Source of the DNA: Botryllus schlosseri
Lineage: Eukaryota
Assembly: GCA_051294905.1 (NCBI GenBank)
Contig: CM119375.1
Span: 3,410,001 to 3,474,000 of the forward strand
Direction: 5' to 3'
DNA: 64,000 nucleotides
Notes under the pieces: model-generated
Told to the model about the DNA's origin: nothing
Seen by the model: only the letters and a program-made list of their open reading frames with translations
The model's database searches: none
Translations under genes and position numbers: made by a program
In this document: positions 12,162 to 61,160 of the stretch, one piece after another
Layout of the letters: every line of letters begins with the position of its first letter
Numbering within the stretch: the stretch's first letter is position 1

Positions 12162-12198
12162 TATATAAGCGCCGGGTCCAGTGGAGCCAAATCATTCC
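12162..12198 (+). promoter_or_regulatory. Core promoter of the six-exon secreted-protein gene (TATA box + initiator)
   Basis: TATATAAG at 12162-12169 and TCATTCC (YYANWYY) at 12192-12198. The TATA sits at -32 to -25 relative to the Inr A (12194), which lies 38 nt before the ATG at 12232. Confidence 0.55.
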
Positions 12199-12231
12199 AT
12201 TCTTTCCTCATTGCTTTTCTACCATCATAAA

Positions 12232-14207
12232 ATGGACATTGCTTCGTTTATATGCCAATGTTTACTGTCTTGCTTCTTATTTCAAGAATTGACTCTTGCC
12301 AAGAGCTATTGCATCTCCCAATCGCGCAAACGTGCGATAAGTTATAATATTTATCAGAAGTTGGGACGATCATACCAGGTGAAAATTACTCTAGCTATTT
12401 TTGCGAATGTCTCCACGACGATTTCACTTAAGTAGGCTTATATGCTACATAATTCGGGCATCACAGACAGTAGATTCTTAAATATAAACATAGTACCGGC
12501 CACGAAGCGGTTCATAGATAATGTCATGTTTACTATAATGTATTTCAAACCTTGGTAACAAGTTCCAATATTAAATTTTATGACACAGACCCAATTTCAC
12601 CTTTAATCAATGAACGACATTAAAAAATACTCTATTTTGATGCATTATAGTCGGTTCGGGTAAAGTGTAGCTTTGTGTTTCAGATTCTAGACTGTTCAGC
12701 GGATACTGATGGTTACGATCCAACTTATGCGATGGGTTTGCTTTACTCCGGAAATGAGGTTTGTATCATTGTGCAGGGTGCATGTTAAGAAACGTGACTG
12801 TCCTAGTAAACCATCGTCATCATGAAACTACAATATAGCATTGTGAATAAGAACCGTCATATGTATAATTCTCCTAGTAAATCAGATAAAAGTTGAGACT
12901 ATATTTCATCTTTTCGCAGGTTCCGCAGTATTCCAGCCCCTTTCAGAATAGCCACCGATCTCCTGCCATCAAAAAGTTCCGGACTGCAGTCGCATTGATT
13001 GAAAAGCTCTCAGCAAAGGTAAGAATTCATTTTTATATTTCTCAACCCTGAAACGTGGATTATTGTGTGTTTCCATTTCTTGCAGCGACTTTCAGATATA
13101 AATAGATGCTTCACCTTCGGGGACCATTACATCACGAGTTTGATCAACAAATGTACAGTACGAAAATATCACCCCACAGTAAGTGACTCTTGAGTCCGGA
13201 ATTGTACTGCAACTTACAGCTGCAATAGAAATTCAATCCCCTTTCGATTCCGAAAGAAGTAATAGTGAATTTTTTCTCGGTGCATATGAGAGAATATACC
13301 CAACACTAGGGCTGGGCACAATGATTTGAGTACTCGAATTTGAATCGAGTATTAATTTTAATGATTCGAGTAGAGTAGTAAAAAACGATTTTTTCGAGTA
13401 TTAAATTATACGCTTCTCGCCACTGAAAGTTAATTTATCAATGAGAATTATAGTTTTGATACTAATTTTCTCTGTTGAAGCGTTGGAACCTTGATTAGCC
13501 GTATCGTAGCATGCGAAACATCTAGTACAAAGCTACGAAGGCTACTGGACGTAGCACATTTCCGAAATCATGATTATCCAACAACATTGTCATCAAGTGG
13601 AATGAATTCGGTATGGTCGAAAAATACCACCAGAGTATCATTTATGAGAAGGATAACAGGCATTATATTCTTTGTGGTGGCATAAAAGATACATATTTGC
13701 ACTTTGACGTATTGTATTATGGTATGACGTCATAATGAGTGATACTCGATTACTCGACTCGACTCGAAGCATATTACGTGATTCAGAATCGAATCACTCA
13801 GGTACTCGATTTTGCCCAGCCCGACCCAACACCTAACCCTCTCGAATACATACATATCGCAGTCAAAGACAACGTTAACTTATTGATCCCCTTTATTTTG
13901 CAGAGAAACGTATTTTCAGCAGACGTGACTGCACATGAAGATCCTATGCATGAATGCACCGAGGTACATATATGATTTGAGAATATTGATATACTCATTC
14001 ATTCATTCATTCATTCAATTCTAGAACGCCAAAACCGCGACACTCCATCGTCTCTACGCAGGACACTCAAAAGTGACGGCACTTACCGACGGATTCGTAC
14101 TGAATTCGAGAAATTTCTGCGGTTGCTTTCTGCTAGATCTTCTCACAGCTGTGAACGAAGTGAAAACGTGCCCAACTTTAAATCAGCACCAGGCGATGAA
14201 CATATAG
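12232..14207 (+). CDS. Novel secreted helical, cytokine-like protein, 218 aa; join(12232..12378,12684..12758,12920..13018,13086..13178,13904..13963,14025..14207)
   Basis: Six exons (147, 75, 99, 93, 60, 183 nt) joined by GT-AG introns (305, 161, 67, 725, 61 nt), all phase 0, give one uninterrupted ORF: MDIASFICQCLLSCFLFQELTLAKSYCISQSRKRAISYNIYQKLGRSYQ|ILDCSADTDGYDPTYAMGLLYSGNE|VPQYSSPFQNSHRSPAIKKFRTAVALIEKLSAK|RLSDINRCFTFGDHYITSLINKCTVRKYHPT|RNVFSADVTAHEDPMHECTE|NAKTATLHRLYAGHSKVTALTDGFVLNSRNFCGCFLLDLLTAVNEVKTCPTLNQHQAMNI*. It has a hydrophobic N-terminal signal-like segment (about aa 1-23) and strong splice sites (e.g. AAG/GTAAGA, ACA/GTAAGT, TTTTCGCAG, TTTATTTTGCAG). The confidence value is for the gene model; product identity is much less certain. 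Confidence 0.82.
13307..13824. mobile_element. hAT MITE family C inside intron 4 of the secreted-protein gene
   Basis: TIRs TAGGGCTGGGCA / TGCCCAGCCCGA; perfect 8-bp TSD CCCAACAC (13299-13306, 13825-13832); ACTCGA subterminal repeats. Confidence 0.9.
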
Positions 14208-14238: not shown

Positions 14239-14323
14239 ATTTATTTATTTGACATTTATTTATTTTATTCAATAATTTATTTAGTTTATTTATTATATAA
14301 CAATTTACTATCAGATATATTTA
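14239..14323 (+). promoter_or_regulatory. 3'UTR AU-rich element (class II-like ARE)
   Basis: Nine ATTTA pentamers in 85 nt (14239, 14243, 14254, 14258, 14275, 14279, 14288, 14303, 14319), including three TTATTTATT nonamers (14241, 14256, 14286), starting 32 nt after the stop codon. Confidence 0.7.
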
Positions 14324-14326
14324 TTT

Positions 14327-14545
14327 GAGGGGCTTCTTCGAGTTATAGAACTTCAAGATACCATTAAATAATATATTCATGTAGAAATAAACCCGGATAT
14401 TTTGGCTGACAATTGTCCAATAGTCGTCGGCAGCTACTAGTAATGACTTGGAAAGAACATATATACAATGTCGCTCTTTCCTATTCTCTACTAGTTCTTG
14501 ACGAGTGTCAGCCGAAAATATTCGTTTTTGTTTCAATATGACTAT
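14327..14545. mobile_element. Foldback family A element directly after the ARE
   Basis: Hairpin end GAGGGGCTTCTTCGAGTTATAGAACTTCAAGATA, then both inverted arms (right arm ...GACGAGTGTCAGCCGAAAATATTCG...TTTCAATATGA). Contains ATTAAA (14363) and AATAAA (14386). Confidence 0.75.
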
Positions 14546-16680
14546 CCTTCTTAGTTATATTTATTTGTAAGACGTTTTAATATTAATTGTGTGCTACGAG
14601 TGTCCACTATACACATGCCAATGCATGCTTGACCGTTAAATGTATTAATAAAACAGGATTACATGAATATGTTTGCACAATATATATTAATACAGAAAGG
14701 ATTTTACATCACGAATCACAGCTTGTAGTTAGCCGATTCAGCGCACAGATGTTAGTCACAGTTGTACCCATTCTCGGGTTATCTAAGCTTGATGACATCA
14801 AGGGAAGGCATTTCAGGCGAAGGTTATCTGCATCAATTTCCTCCGAGATAGCAATGTTGCTGATGACGGATCAAAGAGCGACCGCAAATTGTCCCAGCCA
14901 CGTGCAAGTCATTCACTCTGTTAACATTCATCATTCTTCAATTTCAAAAATTCCCGATGCTAATCCTATTCAGGGGAGTAGCAAAATTGAAGGACCCATT
15001 TATCTTTTTCATGTTTGCTAATAAGTAATGCCTCTCTCGTTAGTGGGTGGAGAAATTTTCTTTAATCAGCTACGTTACAACAACTTCATTAGCATCTTGA
15101 ACACTCTTTCGAATTCTCCCTGCGTGAGATATAAGTTCATAATGCACAGTCTCTAAGCGTGATTTTATTTATGTATACTGGTCGACTACACTGTTTGCGC
15201 TCATTAGTAACAAGCTTGTTTAGAGTTTAACCAATAACTATGCAAACATTTTAGCGATTTAGAAGAAGCTAATTATGAAAAGGTACGAGCTGTAAAACGA
15301 GGATTTCGTTGAGTCAGTCTCTGAAAGCAATTGTCCTACCCTCTAAAACCAAGGCATGATGTCATAAGTCACCCCATATATATATATATATATATATTCG
15401 TTTCCTGTTTACCAAACAATATATCTGATGTCGCTTTTATTGAGAATTTTGAAGCAACATCGTGTCGCTGTGAAATTTATGTCCATTGTACACATTTTGA
15501 GAAAACTACCTTTATGTAAATTTTTCACTTTGTTTCGTCCATATCTTGGTCATGATTAACTCTGAAACAATGTTAAAAGCTTAAACAATGTCAAAATACG
15601 GCCCAATGACTTGATTATGTATGAATTTGAAAAAATGGATCTTAAAATTTGAAAAATGGACATAAGCTACCCTTATTCCGCCGCCTCGAACTATATACGT
15701 AAAATGGTTACGAGGTATAAACTATTGACGCCACGTCAGATTTTTCATCAATGAAGTCTTGTCGACATAAATGATTTTAATCGAACAATTTCACTACGAT
15801 TACACCTGGATTTTATAAAAGCTTGAAATAAATAGCCTACAATACTCTCATAATTTACGGCAACTTCAACCAAGACTGTTCAAATGAACTGAACGTTCAT
15901 GTCATTTCAAATTTACACTTGTATGACCTCGGTTATGGCATACACACTCTGACACAAGTATATCTGGGTTTCCCGCGAGTTTACCCTAATCTTAAGGTAA
16001 TTAGGTTCACGTATTTCGACTTTTCTGCGTACTATGTCTTTTTCCGTTCAACATTGTGGTACACTTTCACTTGTTTAGCTTACGCAGACAATCCACCGTG
16101 TAAAAATTTGCTTCATAGTCGACACCGTTTATCCCTAGATTTCTTCACCCTGGTAATCGTTTCAGCACAGTTTTCCGCACCGCAAAGCCGGTAATTACAG
16201 GTTTGGTATTAGTCAACTCAGAAGCAATGGGCGTATTGAAATTTCAAATGGATTGGTAATGTTTCGATGCAACGGGAATCAGTCTTTAATCACGCTGTTA
16301 AATTGGCTTGTTGTGTGCGCGGTATTTCTTAATCATTAGTGTGCGGATTACAGACATCTAAATCAGCCATGAATCCAATCAACCACTGATTAGGCTTAAC
16401 CCATACGGAAATGAAACACGTGAACAAACACGCAAGCTGTTTTCATGGTCAAAAAATAATGAATTTTGCGAAATAACTGTTTGGTCAGTCAACGATATGA
16501 CTCCTCACGCATTGGCATTTCACACACGACATTGATATAGTGATTTTCTACGACACTGCTATATGTAGTGAGATACACTTCAGTAAGATTGGAGAAGAGA
16601 ACATTATAAATAGCCTTAACCCTGGATAGTGAATATATAAGCCAAGATAATTAACATAATGTATCACAAATGCTTTAGGC

Positions 16681-17842
16681 CAGGTGTGGGCAAACTACGG
16701 CCCGCAACGCCGTTCTGAGCGGCTCGCGAGAGTATAAAGAAACTTATTAAATATATTGATAAAAGGCGTACTAAAAATCGAATTAATGCAAGGACTTGAT
16801 AAAACTTTTTCTTAGTATATTTCACCATGATAATTCTAAGACAGTGTTTCTCAAACTGAGGGCGCGCCCCTTTAGGGGGTGAAAGGGGGGCGCCAAGCAG
16901 AGCTCAACTGAAAAATATTTTCGCGCTGGGCGCGATTTACATCCAGTTCACAACTATTGCTCCGTATTTAGTCTGAATTTCCTGTTTAAAAATCTTTCAT
17001 CCGCAGTCGTAACCTTCCATGCCATCAAACTATCCGTTTGGTTTGCTAGCATCCTGGTTGCGTTTTGTGATATGACCATAAGGGGGGAATCCTTCACCAC
17101 CGTAGGGTGGTGCGTGTCTTAAAAAAATTGAGAACCAGTGTTCTAAGGTAAATACTTCCTATATTATTTTTTATGTTCAATATCTGGCGCGACAGCGCGA
17201 TCTCAAGGCCCACGCAGTTTCAAAGGTTTCAACTGCTAAACATCACAGAAATCCTAAACGAGATTGACATAATTCGGATTCCGAGTACGATTTCAGATTG
17301 GTCACTGCAGTTTCAATAATTTCGGTGATATGCCTAAATAAAACGATTCGCACGTGTCTTAGGTACATTTGTTTCCTGTATGCGTAGAATAAGGGTATTT
17401 ATATTTTTTTATTACACATAGTAGAAGTGTATTTGAAGCTAACATGGTTATGATGCTGTCAGCATTCTCTGTCCTGGAAGTCTGGAACTGAACGAGAAGT
17501 GGAATTGGTAAATCTATGAACAGATGACTGCTCACAGATTTAAACTTCAATCCTGTTCTAAGAATCGGTACAACCGACTTTCATCGCTATAGTTTCAACA
17601 AATTGGTTATTGAGGTCGACCAGCCTATGAAATATCGCCACTGTGTCTGACGAGTGTACGATATCATCAAAGCAATGTTTGATTTGTTTTAAATAAGCAT
17701 ATATATTGTCTCCGTGTATTCACTATATCATCAAATACCAATAATGCGTTTTGGTTTATAATCCCAATTATATATAGTGCGGCCCGCGAATGAATTCAGA
17801 TATTGAATGTGGCCCACGAGCTCAAAATTTTGCCCACCCCTG
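16681..17842. mobile_element. hAT (Buster/Charlie-type) non-autonomous element with a nested second element
   Basis: TIRs CAGGTGTGGGCAAA / TTTGCCCACCCCTG, GGCCCGC subterminal motifs, TSD CTTTAGGC / CTTTAAGC (7/8). Confidence 0.85.
16842..17140. mobile_element. Nested hAT (Buster/Charlie-type) MITE
   Basis: TIRs CAGTGTTTCTCAA / TTGAGAACCAGTG; TSD TTCTAAGA / TTCTAAGG (7/8). Confidence 0.85.
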
Positions 17843-34955: not shown

Positions 34956-37575
34956 AGTAAAATTGGTAAACGAGAGACCCTAGTGAATTACAAGTTTCTT
35001 TAGCGCCAGTTTTACTAAATTAATTGCTATCATCCACCTTTAGTCACTTGTTGGGCCTAATTTTATCACTATGCTAATACATAACCGAATTTTTACAAGG
35101 TAGCTGGTTTGTATTTGAGAAACATACAAATGTCAAAAATAATTCGCGAGATCAATACAAATGACGAAATCCTTATGAAATTGGTTTCAGTTATCTCACG
35201 GAGATCGCCGCTTCGTTCCCATAATTCCACAACAATCCGTCAGTCTTCGTGTAGTAATACCAAGGTTTTGTTTGATCTGCCTTATCGATATGAAAATATT
35301 GCTATCGGTGTTCACGGTACATGGCGTATCGGTTTTCAGAGCGAGTATAACGGTATAACTCGGCTATCATTGGCAATCAACTAGTTCCTATTTCTAATCA
35401 AGAATTACTAACAGTGGTTAAAAACCCATTCGTATACTGGGCAAATGGCAATATAACATGTCTCGATTGGTAACAGGTATTTTGGTTCTAAGCACACAAT
35501 TCAAAGGCTACATATTATAGATTGCATGGTATCATTCAGGATTCCTTGCTGCTATAGTGTGACGTAAGTTGGATGTGATGCCGAAGTGTAGGTGAAGTTG
35601 GTGAATGGTATAGTATCACCCATAAATATCACACTAAGTATCACATATACATCACATCATGTTGAATTCGAAACGATTCTACGACGTGCTTGTGATCTAC
35701 AACAAAATTCGAATTAACAGCAACGTCCACAATAAGATAAAAATGTACTTCTTATCAGCTTATACTGAATTTGAAGGCGAGCAAAACATCCACCAAACGC
35801 AATCACGAAAGCCCAAAGTAGTAACTCCCTTTGATCGAAATTTCCTGACGTTCAAATTCCGGTAATAGAGACGAATGAACGTGTACTGGTCTTTGAATAA
35901 TTCCTGAAGCTAATTATCTTTGATGTTGCAGAGATAACGGAGGGGCGCGTCATGCGTTAAATTACACAAGTGAAATTAACAGAGAACAGGGGGAATTTTT
36001 GCTGGAGTAGGTAATTATTTGTGTTCATGAGAATATCCAAAGTCTTTTATTGAACTGGACCAATATGACAGTCGTTGTTGACGATGTTTACAATTGAATA
36101 ATATATTCATATTGTAGTAAACTGGAGTATTTTCGGCTGGTCCTGGATAATCGTCAACGACTTAGAGAATTCAAAAGAACTTTGTATACGTCAACGTCGC
36201 ATCACCAATGTGAGTGTTATAATTTGGTATAAAACCTCATTACAAACCGTTTTGTCGAATATTTGTTGTGCCATAACACAGATTTTAATCGTGTGACCAT
36301 AACCAGGCCAATCAGAGTCTAATTTAATTCGTTTTCGGCAAGACGGGCGGTTACGGACGCCCAGTTGTGGTTGGCGGCTTTAGAGTTTCGATTGTGAGTT
36401 TCCATATACGTTTATACACGATATAGGCCACCTAACCCTAGCTTATTCGATTACACTGAATCTTCACTAGAAAACTCGGATATCATCATATTTTTGAACT
36501 CGATAAAAGTTTCAAGGTTAGGTAAGGAACTGTGTGGCAAGCTGATAACCTCGAATACCCTTGGCGCACAGTATTGCATGGGTAAACAAATCGAATCGAG
36601 CATAAGATCTTATTGGTATCATTTACCTCTGTAACGTTATTATGTCGCAGAAAATGGTACTATTACAAAAGCGATACAAAACATTAGTAGCGATATAGAG
36701 TAGAGACAAATTCCAATCACTTGAACGTATTTTATTTGTGATGTGATGGAATGAGCAGGTTATTAAAACTATTTCAGTACACTGCGACTCTAATGCAGCA
36801 CTGTGAGTAGCATAAAAAGGCTACTCAACCTTGGTTAAGTCGTGTCGTTATATATCAAATCACGTGCAATTGTGCATTCTATCTGTTGCTTGCAACGTTT
36901 CAATCTTTGATGTTGATAGTAGCCTACATCGCTAGTAACATGGACTTGCATACATAACCATGACTATGATTGCATAACTTATAAATGCGCGAGAATATTT
37001 TTGACAATACAGTCATCTATCAGACTATCACTCATCCGATGCGTATTCTCTCGATTTTATTGCGAAAGAAAAAGGAGTTTTCATTTTTATTACGCGGTCT
37101 GTTGGTATCAGGCTCAATCGTATCGATGGATTTCCAATGAAACGTCTCTCGCTTTTGCGTTCTGCATGAAACTGCGGGTACATATAAATAAGATGATGTT
37201 TGTCTAGCTGTTTCAGACAGATTGCCGTGTAACAAGACGAGGGATTCTGTAGATATAGGTTGGCCATTCTTCTTATGTAATATACATAGTCTAGTTAATT
37301 TAATATAAACAGTACAACGTATAGTAAATGAGATCGATAATAACAACCCTATTGTGCCTTCGAAATGAAAGTCCAAGTTGAGAAATTATTGCTATAATAG
37401 GTGTAAGGTAATGTGATATATTACACCAAATGCATAATTTTATAACTAAACATCGTACATTAGGCAGAAGATTCAGTATTCACTACATTGACTATAGCTT
37501 ATCGCAGCAAAAACCCAAATGAAATTCAAGTATTTGCTTTGCGCATTCAGATATTACTCTTGCATAAATTGTAAC

Positions 37576-39926
37576 ATGCCAACAATGGAAGGAGAAGTCG
37601 AAGTCAAAGTCGCCGATGACGAAGTCGACCCATGCGCGAGGCAATCGCCTCGTAAGCTGCTGCGTACGCCGAAGTGCGCCCGGTGTCGAAACCACGGCGT
37701 TGTCAGCATTTTGAAGGGACACAAGCGACACTGCAGATGGAGGGACTGCCAGTGTTCGAACTGTCTCCTGGTAGTCGAAAGGCAGCGCATTATGGCTGCG
37801 CAGGTGAGATGGAATGTTCCGTATGTTTTGAATGGTTATTGGCTGAATCTCAACCGATATACAACGTATACTATAACACTTTGTCCTTACAATATTTTGC
37901 TCTTAGAGTATAGTACTCACAAATGCACAAGTCCTACGAAGCAGCCGGTGCGTTTTGTATTGTAATGGCACAGCCATTTGTAGTCGGTAATGAAGGAATC
38001 CGACTTATTCTGAGCATTCACGTAGGTTTTACCCATACCTGCACTCATTACGCGAGTGGTTACGTTTTTTGACTACTTCGTTTTGATACTTTGAGCTTTT
38101 TCTAAAGTGGTAAGTAGTTTTGGGAGAGGTTTCCGTCACGTTTGTAACCGAAATTGTAATCACCGTTGAGTAAAATAGAGAGAAAGAGAGAGAGAGTGAC
38201 CAGTTGTCTTCCGTCCACTACTAATATGCTACCTTTTGAAACTACCTACGCTAGTACATTTTTAAATCCATAATTTCTACTTCCACTTGAACTAGCTTTT
38301 ATAGATGCTTTAAATCGCTACTTCTACTTGTAATTAAATAGATATTTATTCAGATAATTGTACTTATACTTGAGTACCAACGATGACTATACTTCGATTA
38401 CATCTGGTTACATCACTAACAAAATGGCGTCGGCTGACATTCTATTTTGAAGTATGAAGCAAATCGGATTAGGATTCTACACTATCCCATTGAAGCAATA
38501 TCGAGTATCATGCACCTTGAATTCCACGTAACGCAATTTCAGGTCGCTTTGCGAAGGCAACAGGCAGCCGAGCACAAGAACGGGTCAAAGTTGATGACAT
38601 CAAGCGACGGGGTTGGCCAATCGCAAGAAAGGCTGGACGCAAATAGAGCAGCGTCGGAATCGCTCAAGCTACGCTCCAGAGCGCTGAAAACAGCGCGGAT
38701 GACGTCAAGGAATTTTACAGAAGGTGAATAACATCTATCGGAAAGTACAGAACACTAATTGTAGTGTACACACAAACTATGTATCACTGATGGATTAGTA
38801 TGGAGTAAAGAGAGTTTAAGGATATCATGCAATGCAATCTACTTCGTCCATCTACTATTCAAAGCAGCACTGGTGTAGGTTACTATCAGATGTGGTCAAA
38901 GTAGACCGCTTTGCTCCTCAAGTAGAAGAAATAGACGTAGTACCGTACTCAATTTTAAGTAGATATAAAAATGTAAAAATTTAGTAGTTTTGCCAGAAAA
39001 ACTGTACAAGTGGACGTAGTTTGAAAACATTACACGTTGAGTAAGACGTGAAAGTAGGTCAAATCTATGTAATTACTCCCAAAAAGTAGAAGCGCTTACT
39101 TACTGACCACCTCTGATCACCATGCGACATTTCCGTCGCCAACCTTCAATACCAGGAATCGCTCACGAATTATAACTTTACAGCTACAAGGACTTCTGCA
39201 ATGCCTCCCTTCACCTCGCCACTGACGGAGCGCATCCGCAAAAGACGCGCATTCGCTGACAAAAGCCTCGAAGATATATACTACAGATCTGCCGATCATT
39301 CGGCGAGCAGGGCCAGAGACTACAGGCCTGTGACAACGTCACATGACCTCAATGTTACATCACGGTCGAATGACGATATCATAGAACCGAAAAAACCGAG
39401 ACCGGCATGTCCCGAAAACATATATCAACAACCGATATCTCGGGTCGCATCCAGCGAAGCAGTACCGCGTTTGGAGGTTCAGTATCCAAGAGTTATCAAT
39501 GGCGGTGTTACATTGAACGAAAATTACAGAAACTACCTCCTAAAACTTATGTATCTTCAACATAATTTGTTTCCTGATATCAGCAATGCACACTGCCACA
39601 ACGCACAGACAATGACCAACTTGCGAGTCCCTCAAAACATCGATTACGTCAGTAAATATTGGCAAATGCTAGCTGGCGACCACATTTCAAATTATTCAAT
39701 GCCAAGACGTTCTCCGTTGGGACGAAATTCACCCGTTGACGTACAGGCAAGGTACTTCGATTGGCTGAACAGTTTACATTCGATTCGACAGCAATCGACC
39801 CCGAGCCCTCGTTCGATGTCGGACTGCTCCTCTCCTGAGTCGATAGGTGTTACGCCAAAACTCCCTGCGGATAGATGCGGAAAACCTCACGATTTTTCCG
39901 TTGCGTCTATCATCGGAAAATCGTAG
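37576..39926 (+). CDS. dmrt2: Doublesex/Mab-3 related transcription factor, DMRT2/Dmrt11E type, copy A, 383 aa; join(37576..37803,38543..38723,39184..39926)
   Basis: DM domain [47 protein letters not shown]|VALRRQQA has all eight zinc ligands. It also has the DMRT2-diagnostic [15 protein letters not shown] and C-terminal FSVASIIG. Splice sites CAG/GTGAGA, TTTCAG/, AAG/GTGAAT and TTTACAG/ keep frame (phases 0, 1); total 1152 nt. Start could be ATG 37585. Confidence 0.95.
38051..38406. mobile_element. Degenerate family D element in dmrt2 copy A intron 1 (reverse orientation)
   Basis: CTACTTCTACTTG and TACTTGAGTAC motifs, terminus GATTACATCTG; left boundary approximate. Confidence 0.55.
38887..39115. 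mobile_element. Family D element in dmrt2 copy A intron 2
   Basis: TIRs CAGATGTGGTCA / TGACCACCTCTG, AAGTAG motifs; TSD degenerate (GTTACTAT / ATCACCAT). Confidence 0.75.
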
Positions 39927-40387
39927 TTGCACGGTGCTCGCCTCACCAACATATCGCAGCATTCCCGGAGATGATTTTGATGAAGTATATTTTCAGCAAT
40001 ATTTTAAAAATGATGCTTAAGGTCTCCAAATGCTCAGCGGCAATACGCATGACTTCTTCAAGCAACTGCATACCGCCACCAAGTTTCTTTACTAATTATA
40101 AACATGTTAGTTAGGGCGCACTTGTAACTGTACCCAAACGCATCTGTTGGTAATCGAAAAGTGTGGAGTTCGATTATAATTTTTAACGTTTTGCATTCGT
40201 TCCTTATTATTTATTTCCACTGTCCTTATATTGAGACGAAAATTCCAATGCTTCCATGGCTGTTTGTATAAGTTACAAGCGCCTGTTATTATGAATAGTC
40301 ATAAAAATTGTTGGAACAAGGAGCATTATTTACCGCGATGTCATTTCACTATTACAATTTGTTCCAGTTGAAATTATAAACGTTTGA

Positions 40388-40393
40388 AATAAA
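40388..40393 (+). terminator. Candidate polyadenylation signal of dmrt2 copy A
   Basis: First AATAAA I found after the stop at 39926. Confidence 0.4.
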
Positions 40394-41845
40394 CTTTTCC
40401 GTTTAACATATTTGTATAGATTTGCATATCAAGTGGAATAGGGTTACATATTCTCTCATTAGAATTATGGAGGTAATTGCTGTATTGAGTTTTATCCACA
40501 ACAGTCTTGACTCAAATCATATCAATTATGTACAATTGAGCAATGGGCATGGCTAGTAAGCTGACTACATAGGCGATTTTATGTACGTATACAGGAATAT
40601 ATCTTATGTTGAGGGTAAGTTATTTCTATATCCTTACTCAATCTAGGACGTTATTTAATAACATGGTGGAGCTTTCAACACAGATTTGTCGCCATTTTTA
40701 AGTTTGCTCTCTCATACTCATGAATTCGTTCGCAGCAAAGGGCGGTAAAAGTCGGACGTGGAAGAACATCTCATTACGAATGCGTTGTAATAACTAAATA
40801 CACTGATAAAAGTAAATTAGTTTACATATTTTATTTTCGACTTAAAACGCGTAACTGCGGAACTAATTTGTTATCGTCTCAAATTGTACGCATTTCGCGA
40901 GAAACGCAGACAGGAAGTAACACATTTGACGATCTAATCACTGCTGTAAAACCATACCATAGTTGACATGACTAGATATCGCGATATATGTTATTTTTAA
41001 TGCATTTAATATATTCAACCTAAATATAGACATTTTGTTCCTTCAACATCCCTAAGAGTGGGCAATTGAAGTCACAGGTGAACCCTATAATAAAATGCAT
41101 AGCCGTGGCGCACATTTGATATCACGTTTTTTTTACCAATAATGATTATTATTATCAATAATATCGCGAATAACAGCTAGTAGTTTTACCTGTTCATACA
41201 CGTGATCATAGATCACAAAAGAATATCATAATTTTAATGCAATTCAGGACTTCACAAGTTCTTAATTCATATTCCATGAAGAATCAGAAGGAGAATAATA
41301 ATATCCATTAATCAATTGATGATATGTACATTGTACCTGTGCCTTGGACCACTAGAATCTATGCAGGAACGTGTAACTTGGAAGTTGAAAGTTGAAATTG
41401 AGGAAAGCTTAGAGTTGGGCTCAATGCTTGGGGCATACTCTAATGAGAATCAGGTAATAATTCTAATGATTCGAGTCCAGCTGTGACAATATTTTCGAAT
41501 ACTGACATTATCCGCTCTTTGCCACTTATATGCGTTAATTTATATTTGAGAATCATAGTTAGTTACGATACTATTTTCCACCGTGGAGGGCTTTAAACCT
41601 CGATTGGTCGTATTGCAGCATATGAAGCATGCAGTGCAACAATATACAAGTTACTTGAAATAACCGATCTCTGTGTCGACAAAATACCAACTATGATGTA
41701 AAATAGGCTTTTTATTATTTGTGATTGCATATTAGCACATATCTGAACTTTTCAAATCATTCATGCTGTTGTGACGTTATACTTAGAGATACTCGAGTAA
41801 TTGACTCAACTTAAAGCAGCCTAATACTCGATTTTTAGTTGAATC

Positions 41846-58175: not shown

Positions 58176-61160
58176 ATGAGTATGGACATAACATCAGCGG
58201 ATAATGACTGCGATCCGAAAGAGATCGACTCTCTACCTTCGGACTCCCGCAAACCCCTCAGAACTCCGAAATGCGCGCGGTGCCGAAACCACGGTGTGGT
58301 CAGCATCTTAAAAGGGCACAAACGACACTGCAGGTGGCGCGATTGTCAATGTTCAAACTGCTTGCTGGTGGTGGAGAGGCAGCGCATAATGGCGGCGCAG
58401 GTAATATGTGACCCTGAACTTTGAGTCAATGTGAAAATGGCGGATGAAACCAGGCGCGATATGCGCAACTCGGCCGCGTGTAATGGCGATATATTCGGCC
58501 GTGCTCATCGTTATTTGCCGGTGTTCAATCAAGTCAGTTTATGAGGTATCACGCTGATCATATAATGATAATCTAATATATATATATATTGGAACTCGCT
58601 TTGAAGGAAGTTAACTCCAATCTACTAGTGTAATATAGTGTTCACGAAAATTATTTTCTGATTTCATTGTTTGAGAGCTTCTCGGAGATACAGAACCTCC
58701 ATATACAATTGGATAGTGTATTCATATTGAAATAAACACCAACATTTTCGGCTAACATTCTTCAAGGGTAATCGTCAGCAACTAGTAGAGAATATATACA
58801 TTTACTATTCACAATTCTCTACTAATTGTTGACGATTACCCTTGACGAGTGTCAGCCTAAAATATTTGGGTTCATTTCAATATGAATATATTATTCAATT
58901 GATCTCATATTATTTCACTATGTAATTAATGAGAACTACAATATACTAAAATAGAGTGTTATGTAACAATCAATTATAATTTTTGACGATGTTAAGGTCG
59001 CATTGCGTCGACAACAAGCCGCCGAAGTGAAACGCGGTAAGAGCCTCATGCGTGATCCTATGGAGTCGGTCGATACAGAGGAGAAGTTGCAGGCCAATAA
59101 AGTCGCCGCTGAATCTCTGAGACTACGCAGCCGGGCACTCCGGAACGCGAGGATATCTTCCAAAAGCATGTTGGATGGTGGGTAGAAATTTTATGATTAT
59201 TCTATTTTGGCTGAGCGTATATGTAACAAAATAAATACTCAGTTGCATCCTTGATAGGTATCGCACCCGATACATTTTCATCTTGCTTTTTGCTGGTTGA
59301 ATCATACACAAAACATTAAAGATGACATGCGTTGTTTGAAGAATTGGCATTGTATAATGTATATGCGTTTTCTGTAGAATCATATTCCTCCATATCCATA
59401 TATAAGTGTAACTCTTCTGACATATCTAAAATCAGTATTTCCTTTCGAAAAAATTATACCGCCCACACATACGACGTGATATATGTTTGACTTTCAACTC
59501 GTAGTAAAATAGTCGTGAGATATATAGCGAGAATCTGTTACATATAATCGAGTTTTGGTAAGTTGCAATGAGTCAAGGATTGTCCGATTCGTTTTTCTGT
59601 CATTGTTTTTACGATTTACCATGTGATCATCGGTACAAAAGACTACTTGGTCAGAGTCACACTAGAAAACAATATAGGTATCAACTGCACGACTGGGAAG
59701 ATTTTTCTCACTACCAAGGCAGCGTCGGCCAACTCAAACTTTCGCGGCTACGTGACTGCCGTAACTTGGTGTTGTAATGTCGTCATAACGTAACAGTAAT
59801 GTCATGTGGGTAAGGACTATGTCTCGGTTTTCCGGTAGTCTGTATTCTTCTATTTCTATCATGTCATCCATTACTTCATTCATCATTATTCATTTATTCA
59901 TGATACGTTCTCCACACCAGAGTTGACAACTAGTATATTTCAGCTTTTCCAAATGACATCAGAATTTGAATTACATCTGCACGTTTTTTTAAATTACATT
60001 AAAACTTGAATTAAATGATTCGCAACAAACTTGGAGATTTAGAGAAATACAACTATAATCAAGTTCATTTCATAACAAATCTGAGTTAATTATCATAAGA
60101 ACGAGAATGGCAAACGTCTGTACAGCAAGCTTGGCACGTCTCACACTATATAGTTCTCTTGTAGCGTTTTCAGGAAAACCGGAAATTAGATTAGAATTAA
60201 TATTAGAGCATATAGAAACATTTCAATACTTAGATTAAAAATTTATTACCGGCATTTTCTCTAATCTAATTCGACATCAAGAAGTATCCAGTTTTTCATG
60301 TCTGATACACATACGTTATCACCCGACATAATATTTCTCTTCTATTGACAGCATCGAGATTTTCTGTGATTCAACCGCATATATCCCCGCTCACCGAGAG
60401 AATCCGAAAAAGACGAGCGTTCGCCGACGAGAGTTTGGAGGACATGTTCGTATCACAATCCAGAGCATTACCCCCGTCTTCTGAATCGATTATCCCGTCT
60501 CCAACGATGGTAGCAAGCCGTCCCATATTCAGTACATTACCGGAGGTAAAGATGACTCCTCATCATGAATTACCAGAGAAAAGAGCTCGCTGTGAACAAC
60601 AGACTTGGTTGAGAAGAGAATGCATCACACCACCACGACCAGATGAGTTCACCGCTAACATTTTGCGAATGCAAAGAGAAGCCTTCTCAAGCTGCGCGGG
60701 TCCGTTCATAGGAAGCAGTAACTCTCCTGACATGACAAATCCTTTTATGTCATTCCCATCATTCGGTGTGCAAAAGAATAGCATCCCGCAAAACCCATTT
60801 CTTGCGCGTTTGTACGCTGAGAATTTGATGAAAGTGAGGAACCTATTGCCAAGCTCTATTAGAAATGTACCCCAACTTCCTGCGAATTTTTTAAGCAGTA
60901 TTTATCAAAGCCCAACGTTTATTCCGCCTTCCTTTATGGCATCGACTTCGCGGCCTAACGTAGCATCGGTGGAGTCTGCGTTCCGCGCGCCGGACTGGTT
61001 TCGGCATCTGTACGCGTCGCGGTCAGGTCGGGACTTTTTGACAACTGTGTCCGACTGCTCCTCGCCGGAAAATAGCTGTCGCCTCAATTCGCCGTCGGAG
61101 GAGTCCGTTACGAGTCCAATTCCGAGTAAATTTTCAGTTGCCTCTATCGTAGGGAGCTGA
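58176..61160 (+). CDS. dmrt2: Doublesex/Mab-3 related transcription factor, DMRT2/Dmrt11E type, copy B, 404 aa; join(58176..58400,58997..59177,60352..61160)
   Basis: DM core identical to copy A, with [15 protein letters not shown] and C-terminal FSVASIVG. Intron positions and phases match copy A, and exon 2 has the same length (181 nt). Total 1215 nt, open throughout. The exon 2 acceptor is AAG. Confidence 0.95.
58673..58901. mobile_element. Foldback family A element in dmrt2 copy B intron 1
   Basis: Near-perfect inverted arms CAATTGGATAGTGTATTCATATTGAAAT...CAACTAGTAGAGAA / TTCTCTACTAATTG...ATTTCAATATGAATATATTATTCAATTG, with a hairpin on the left only. Confidence 0.88.

Follow-up and report, generated by a model that had tools for sequence, protein, structure and literature searches.

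The analysed stretch of Botryllus schlosseri DNA (64,000 nucleotides of contig CM119375.1, assembly GCA_051294905.1, positions 3,410,001 to 3,474,000 of the forward strand; hereafter the window) carries at 12232-14207 a six-exon locus that is very probably a real, constrained, unannotated stand-alone protein-coding gene. With somewhat less confidence, we regard its product as probably a tightly regulated secreted signalling protein, cytokine-like in the functional sense, because its TATA promoter, its AU-rich element (ARE) and its silence in bulk RNA all point the same way. The locus comprises a chain of exons, promoter, ARE and poly(A) motifs around it, a contrast in composition between exons and introns, and a conserved mature segment of exon 1; from these features we infer that the product is secreted and acts in signalling, that the mRNA is unstable and that the gene is inducible. 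Transcription from a TATA/initiator core promoter would yield an mRNA of approximately 0.9 kb made of six short exons, and its product would enter the secretory pathway through a 23-residue signal peptide. The mature product would be a basic protein of approximately 195 aa with eight cysteines, probably paired in four disulfides. Owing to the dense class-II-type ARE in the 3' untranslated region (UTR), the mRNA is expected to be short-lived, and the combination of TATA promoter, ARE and no detectable expression in the examined samples suggests a tightly switched, transient extracellular signalling protein.

Rebuilt from the window sequence, six + strand exons join through five GT-AG introns into an open reading frame (ORF) of 218 aa followed by a stop codon. 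Exon 1 (12232-12378, 49 aa) opens with an ATG in the context AAAATGG and contains the predicted signal peptide (12232-12300, 23 aa, cut between TLA and KS) and the first mature segment (12301-12378). It is followed by exon 2 (12684-12758, 25 aa, phase 0 on both sides), exon 3 (12920-13018, 33 aa), exon 4 (13086-13178, 31 aa), exon 5 (13904-13963, 20 aa) and exon 6 (14025-14207, 60 aa and the stop codon TAG at 14205-14207). Since the length of each of the six exons is a multiple of 3, all five introns are in phase 0. An earlier, sequence-only reading of this DNA had proposed such a six-exon, 218-aa, all-phase-0 model with GT-AG introns, and the reconstruction confirmed it. The eight cysteines that it assigned to the mature protein lie exactly where it placed them (27, 53, 115, 130, 156, 190, 192 and 207), and three more fall within the signal peptide (8, 10 and 14). 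It had also held that the ORF track captures exons 1 and 5 only, as unrelated fragments; the ORF list contains exon 1 in an 84-aa ORF, exon 5 in a 78-aa ORF and the remaining exons as shorter fragments of 37-52 aa. No paralogues of the gene model were detected within the window by tblastn.

Both ends of the model are marked by signals. Upstream on the + strand, a TATA box (TATATAAG, 12162-12169) matches TATAWAAR, and an initiator-like TCATTCC, read from the sequence, is located at 12192-12198. The putative transcription start, A12194, lies 32 nt past the first T of the TATA box, and the start codon follows 38 nt downstream of it, giving a predicted 5'UTR (12194-12231) without an upstream ATG. 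Across both strands of the window, the combination of TATAWAAR, a correctly spaced initiator and a Kozak ATG within 120 nt occurs a single time, at this locus. Downstream, the ARE (14239-14323, +) begins 32 nt past the stop codon and contains nine ATTTA pentamers, including three TTATTTATT nonamers; it is the sole site on either strand of the window with at least five ATTTA per 100 nt. The hallmark of class II AREs, a U-rich 3'UTR in which several AUUUA or UUAUUUAUU motifs overlap, fits the nine pentamers and three nonamers found here. Two poly(A) signals on the same strand, ATTAAA at 14363 and AATAAA at 14386 (together 14363-14391), follow the element and predict a nearby cleavage site.

The exon boundaries were assessed with a generic metazoan splice matrix applied to every GT and AG dinucleotide in the window; by this measure, 7 of the model's 10 splice sites fall in the top 3%. 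Among them are the exon 3 acceptor (11.9 bits, top 0.1%), the exon 5 acceptor (10.3 bits, top 0.2%) and the exon 3 donor (AAG/GTAAGA, 10.2 bits, top 0.2%); the exon 1 donor (CAG/GTGAAA, top 1.6%) and the exon 2 acceptor (top 1.8%) both score 7.4 bits. In a purpose-written exon-chaining search, this chain emerged as the longest phase-0 model of the two strands. By combined splice and length score, the locus ranks second in the window, behind a DMRT gene, and lies approximately 1.5-2 standard deviations over the null maximum. The GC content is 44.1% in the exons and 34.8% in the introns; when the exon/intron layout was placed at random 5000 times, this contrast was attained once. An unconstrained version of the chaining score was discarded, as it grew into window-long chains; at the same penalty it gave 484 for the + strand and 243 for the - strand, an excess that may come from strand-biased T-rich tracts or from a larger number of + strand genes.

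Evidence of constraint comes from a divergent relative. A search of 5.8 billion protein clusters with the ORF that runs from the 5'UTR through exon 1 into the beginning of intron 1 found one relative, P0127, predicted from a 1146-nt Logan contig (SRR25569784) that is unspliced. Its mature exon-1 segment shows no change in 26 residues, and its signal peptide differs at 5 of 23 positions, all of them hydrophobic swaps. The non-coding read-through (5'UTR and intron), in contrast, has 10-11 of 35 codons changed (Fisher p ~0.001 vs the mature segment), and identity stops just beyond the donor GTGAAA. A second divergent sequence was found in run X2 (labelled RNA), in which a low-depth contig covers 13026-13204 unspliced, from intron 3 through exon 4 and on into intron 4. 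It carries 8 mismatches, three of them listed: 13172 C>G in exon 4 (His136Gln) and two within intron 3. Carried-over genomic DNA, nascent RNA and a divergent haplotype are all conceivable sources of this contig. Together, P0127 and the X2 contig suggest that a copy approximately 5-10% divergent exists in public data.

Several results weigh against a functional signalling gene. In block-wise dinucleotide shuffles (100 runs per setting), the chain length of 657 nt was attained in 4 of 100 runs when only phase 0 was allowed and in 47 of 100 with any phase. Taken alone, ORF length and splice scores thus separate the locus only weakly from shuffled sequence, at a borderline p of approximately 0.05-0.1, and because shuffles come within reach they are not by themselves proof of a gene. 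Three splice sites are weak: the exon 2 donor at 12758 (GAG/GTTTGT, 4.5 bits, top 7.5%), the exon 5 donor at 13963 (GAG/GTACAT, 4.8 bits) and the exon 6 acceptor at 14025 (4.0 bits, the weakest of the model's sites). The conservation test covers one exon and one sequence at the amino-acid level. Tandem Repeats Finder (TRF) classes the ARE tract as a degenerate (ATTT)n repeat, and the element could be a decayed ATTT microsatellite; an ATTT tract of microsatellite origin would, when located inside a 3'UTR, still read as an AU-rich element. The 600 bp upstream contain no NF-kB, interferon-stimulated response element (ISRE), interferon-gamma-activated sequence (GAS) or AP-1 motif in a motif scan, and the upstream scan for ISRE, IRF, NF-kB, GAS, AP-1, cAMP response element (CRE), C/EBP and ETS motifs revealed no enrichment.

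Transcription evidence adds to these points. No read fell on any exon in a sample of approximately 1.9 Gb from a bulk RNA-seq run of 2026, and the three contig sets examined showed no exon depth. The lone contig over exon 4, that of X2, is unspliced, and exon 6 with the UTR appeared in no listed RNA run in a search of kind 'any' rather than one dedicated to RNA. All RNA matches to the locus derive from a MITE-type transposon (miniature inverted-repeat transposable element) in intron 4 (13305-13822), which lies outside the coding model. Its terminal inverted repeats take the form GGGCTGGGCA(C/A)AAT; they are 14 nt long (GGGCTGGGCACAAT / ATTTTGCCCAGCCC) and accompanied by an inner 22-nt inverted pair. 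The MITE is present at enormous depth and in many internal-deletion variants in all RNA and DNA runs compared. An in-frame alternative acceptor for exon 5 at 13820 lies inside its end and is less likely to be used. The exons themselves are not repeats, given that their depth is zero in the repeat-rich run X10. Two further repeat features were noted nearby: another copy resembling a MITE terminus at 17827-17840, and an element at 14400-14517 with an 18-nt inverted repeat (TTTTGGCTGACAATTGTC / GACGAGTGTCAGCCGAAA), directly past the second poly(A) signal, probably representing another small transposon. In X10, 14482-14588 is highly repeated.

Silence of this kind fits an inducible silent gene and a dead gene equally well. 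The locus might accordingly be non-functional, whether because its open frames and splice-like sites line up by chance or because the gene is dead or dying, as the missing exon RNA, a chain score within reach of shuffles and the three weak splice sites would allow. We nevertheless consider this improbable, since five independent signals coincide with the predicted boundaries and together amount to far more than chance: the promoter, the signal peptide, the GC contrast (1/5000), the ARE with its poly(A) signals and the conservation of exon 1 (p ~0.001).

The encoded protein itself points to secretion. Its N-terminus, which the sequence-only reading had described as resembling a signal peptide, has an uncharged 15-residue h-region with Thr at -3 and Ala at -1 ahead of Lys24, and a simple signal-peptide rule is passed by 12 of the 299 ATG-initiated ORFs of the window, this one included. 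The mature protein is basic, with a net charge of +7, and lacks an N-glycosylation sequon. Searches for relatives and folds provided little further guidance. By phmmer, exon 6 had no homologues among 1.84 billion representatives, not even a self-match, and yielded two chance matches to repeat motifs such as SVTALNDGFVV; because even the self-match is missing, the gene appears to be absent from this large protein collection (~15 billion sequences). The six exon pieces had no Pfam match at E up to 10, a PDB sequence search with four of them returned chance-level matches (E ~1) to unrelated proteins, and an ESM Atlas search with exon 6 gave nothing usable. No function is therefore supported at the level of a protein family, a further point against the signalling interpretation. 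Modeled alone with AlphaFold2, the exon 4 piece forms a helix over residues 2-28 (predicted local distance difference test, pLDDT, 80) and the exon 6 piece a helix over residues 2-47 (mean pLDDT 71). These models are weak evidence because short isolated peptides often come out helical, in our uncalibrated judgement. The amphipathic helix-like segments claimed in the sequence-only reading were not supported: the alpha-periodicity of hydrophobicity in the mature protein is 0.10 against 0.09 in shuffled sequence, a value attained by 391 of 1000 shuffles, and Chou-Fasman prediction gives a mixed picture.

Dibasic sites offer a different way of reading the product, as a precursor of a peptide hormone or neuropeptide cleaved at RKR 32-34, KK 92-93, KR 107-108 and RK 133-134. 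The first of these, and the KR over the exon 3/4 junction, had already been pointed out in the sequence-only reading and are both found in the rebuilt protein, which also has a signal peptide. However, it contains no amidation site of the Gly-Lys-Arg type (no GKR or GRR) and no repeated peptide units, and the KR and RK sites lie inside segments modeled as continuous helices. The eight cysteines, moreover, are spread over the entire chain, which suggests one disulfide-bonded globular domain. A hormone precursor is the most improbable of the alternatives considered.

A secreted cysteine-containing protein without cytokine function is also on the unlikely side, although less remote. It could be a lineage-specific immune effector or antimicrobial, a component of the tunic or matrix, or a gamete or larval factor, and its ARE-like tract would then be an AT-rich microsatellite that arose by chance. 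Secreted proteins that evolve fast and are confined to one lineage are common, and an orphan without homologues in the exon 6 search, with a basic mature protein (+7), a tract that TRF sees as repeat-like and an upstream region free of immune transcription-factor motifs would suit this description. On the other side, no second ATTTA cluster of this kind occurs in 128 kb of strand sequence, and the one present falls exactly in the 3'UTR. The strict conservation of the mature N-terminus was also listed against it, yet a conserved mature exon 1 with a drifting signal peptide fits a folded ligand and an effector alike and does not discriminate between them.

A more specific form of the signalling interpretation is that the locus encodes a class II helical cytokine, a four- to six-helix bundle of the IL-10/interferon (IFN) type, homologous or analogous to vertebrate IFN-lambda/IL-10 and the amphioxus IFN-like proteins and acting through a cytokine receptor and JAK-STAT signalling. 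Published screens recognise genes of this family by a signal peptide, several helices and five coding exons separated by phase-0 introns (PMC8863823, PMC2654155, PMC12652433). A typical member totals approximately 170-210 aa, keeps its intron positions and packs five to six alpha-helices into a bundle. Three of the four published screening features are present here, namely the signal peptide, the length of approximately 200 aa and the phase-0 introns (PMC8863823, PMC2654155, bioRxiv 10.64898/2026.05.30.728932), whereas the gene has six coding exons and five introns instead of five coding exons. Further support comes from the exon 4 and 6 pieces, modeled as helices in isolation, from the cytokine-style ARE in the 3'UTR and from the precedent of type IV IFN, which was likewise discovered as an unannotated gene of low expression (PMC8863823). 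Ciona, in addition, possesses a gp130-like class I receptor and a CLF-3-like orphan receptor (PMC1963337).

Several observations speak against a class II cytokine. No similarity to IL10, Interferon, IL22 or IL28A was found in Pfam at E up to 10, nor any cytokine match in PDB, with exon-sized pieces as queries. Members of this family often fail sequence and profile tests, and their genes are typically missed by annotation and BLAST (PMC8863823, PMC2654155). Hydrophobic alpha-periodicity is at the level of shuffles with a mixed Chou-Fasman result, helix models of isolated peptides carry the caveat given above, and neither IRF/ISRE nor NF-kB sites occur in the 600 bp upstream. A 2026 preprint that applied the same criteria reported IFN-like genes from lampreys and amphioxus but from no further invertebrates; when it screened annotated proteins by structure, the tunicate Styela clava yielded none (bioRxiv 10.64898/2026.05.30.728932), although such a screen is blind to unannotated genes. 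Of the 14 lamprey genes that combined phase-0 introns, a signal peptide and a length below 300 aa in that study, one proved IFN-like (bioRxiv 10.64898/2026.05.30.728932), so that the prior from such gene features alone is low. The helical cytokine proposed in the sequence-only reading therefore survives in part: the hidden gene for a secreted protein stands, with its signal peptide, size and intron phase, and the ARE speaks for it, while the six exons, the missing family match, the lack of amphipathic periodicity and the absence of ISRE, NF-kB and GAS motifs speak against it. It appears unlikely to us that the locus encodes the IFN/IL-10-like class II helical cytokine missing from tunicates and overlooked by the 2026 proteome-based screens; if it does, the oversight would follow from the gene being unannotated and silent.

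The locus matters under either outcome. Practically no helical cytokine ligand is known from tunicates, which are the sister group of vertebrates, and the gp130-like and CLF-3-like receptors of Ciona are not known to have a ligand. These receptors and components of the JAK-STAT pathway are present in that genus (PMC1963337, PMC3296744), and two 2026 preprints have traced IFN-like ligands to amphioxus and lampreys, one of them reporting none in a tunicate proteome. Screens based on proteomes are blind to genes that annotation has missed. As a concrete candidate that can be cloned, and whose promoter, exons and UTR are delimited, the locus makes the question accessible to direct experiment. If its product proves to be a class II cytokine, the IFN-like genes of amphioxus would be connected through it with the interferons of vertebrates, and the tunicate cytokine receptors would gain a candidate ligand. 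Even if not, the locus is a well-supported example of a silent orphan gene with an ARE and a secreted product, missing from a collection of ~15 billion protein sequences.

Elsewhere in the window, a DMRT2-like gene occupies 37519-40966 (+); its first ORF contains a DM domain (Pfam PF00751, E 1.4e-24), a downstream exon of 241 aa lies at 39201-39926, and its best relatives, 37-45% identical, come from Logan contigs, while searches with the DMRT exons gave best matches of 45-65% identity. DMRT genes are found near the human IFN loci, and the human type I IFN locus arose by retroposition. Synteny through the DMRT2-like neighbour at 37.5 kb was consequently rejected as evidence for an IFN, with no other neighbour identified. 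A 271-aa ORF at 60345-61160 (+) lacks a Pfam match, is linked by the chaining search to 59568-59751 and may be a gene or a transposon ORF.

With the class II ARE mRNAs of the GM-CSF, TNF-alpha and IL-3 type it shares clustered and overlapping AUUUA motifs, UUAUUUAUU nonamers and a U-rich 3'UTR near the stop codon; the element here can also be described as a degenerate (ATTT)n microsatellite. The known tunicate cytokines (TNF-alpha, IL-17s, MIF and the TGF-beta family) are, as proposed for this product, secreted immune mediators of ascidians, but differ from it in gene structure. The segment C190-G-C192 is present, yet the C-x-C pieces have no Pfam match, IL-17 included, and are modeled as helix rather than the beta strands of an IL-17-type cystine knot. 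The IFN-like genes of amphioxus and lampreys (BfIFN1/2, BjIFN1/2 and Pma/LcIFN, described in the 2026 preprints) are distinguished by predicted helical folds and functional data and were compared here by description; they too encode secreted chordate proteins and were recognised by gene structure and fold, not by sequence, with the same screening logic of phase-0 introns, a signal peptide and fewer than 300 aa. From the class II cytokine genes (the IL-10 family and the intron-containing type I, III and IV IFN genes), the locus departs in having six exons rather than five, no piece-level similarity, no ISRE or NF-kB motifs and a bundle fold that is only hypothesised. It resembles them in encoding a secreted protein of approximately 200 aa with a signal peptide of approximately 23 aa on short phase-0 exons, in its low or undetectable basal expression and in having been missed by annotation and BLAST (PMC8863823, PMC2654155).

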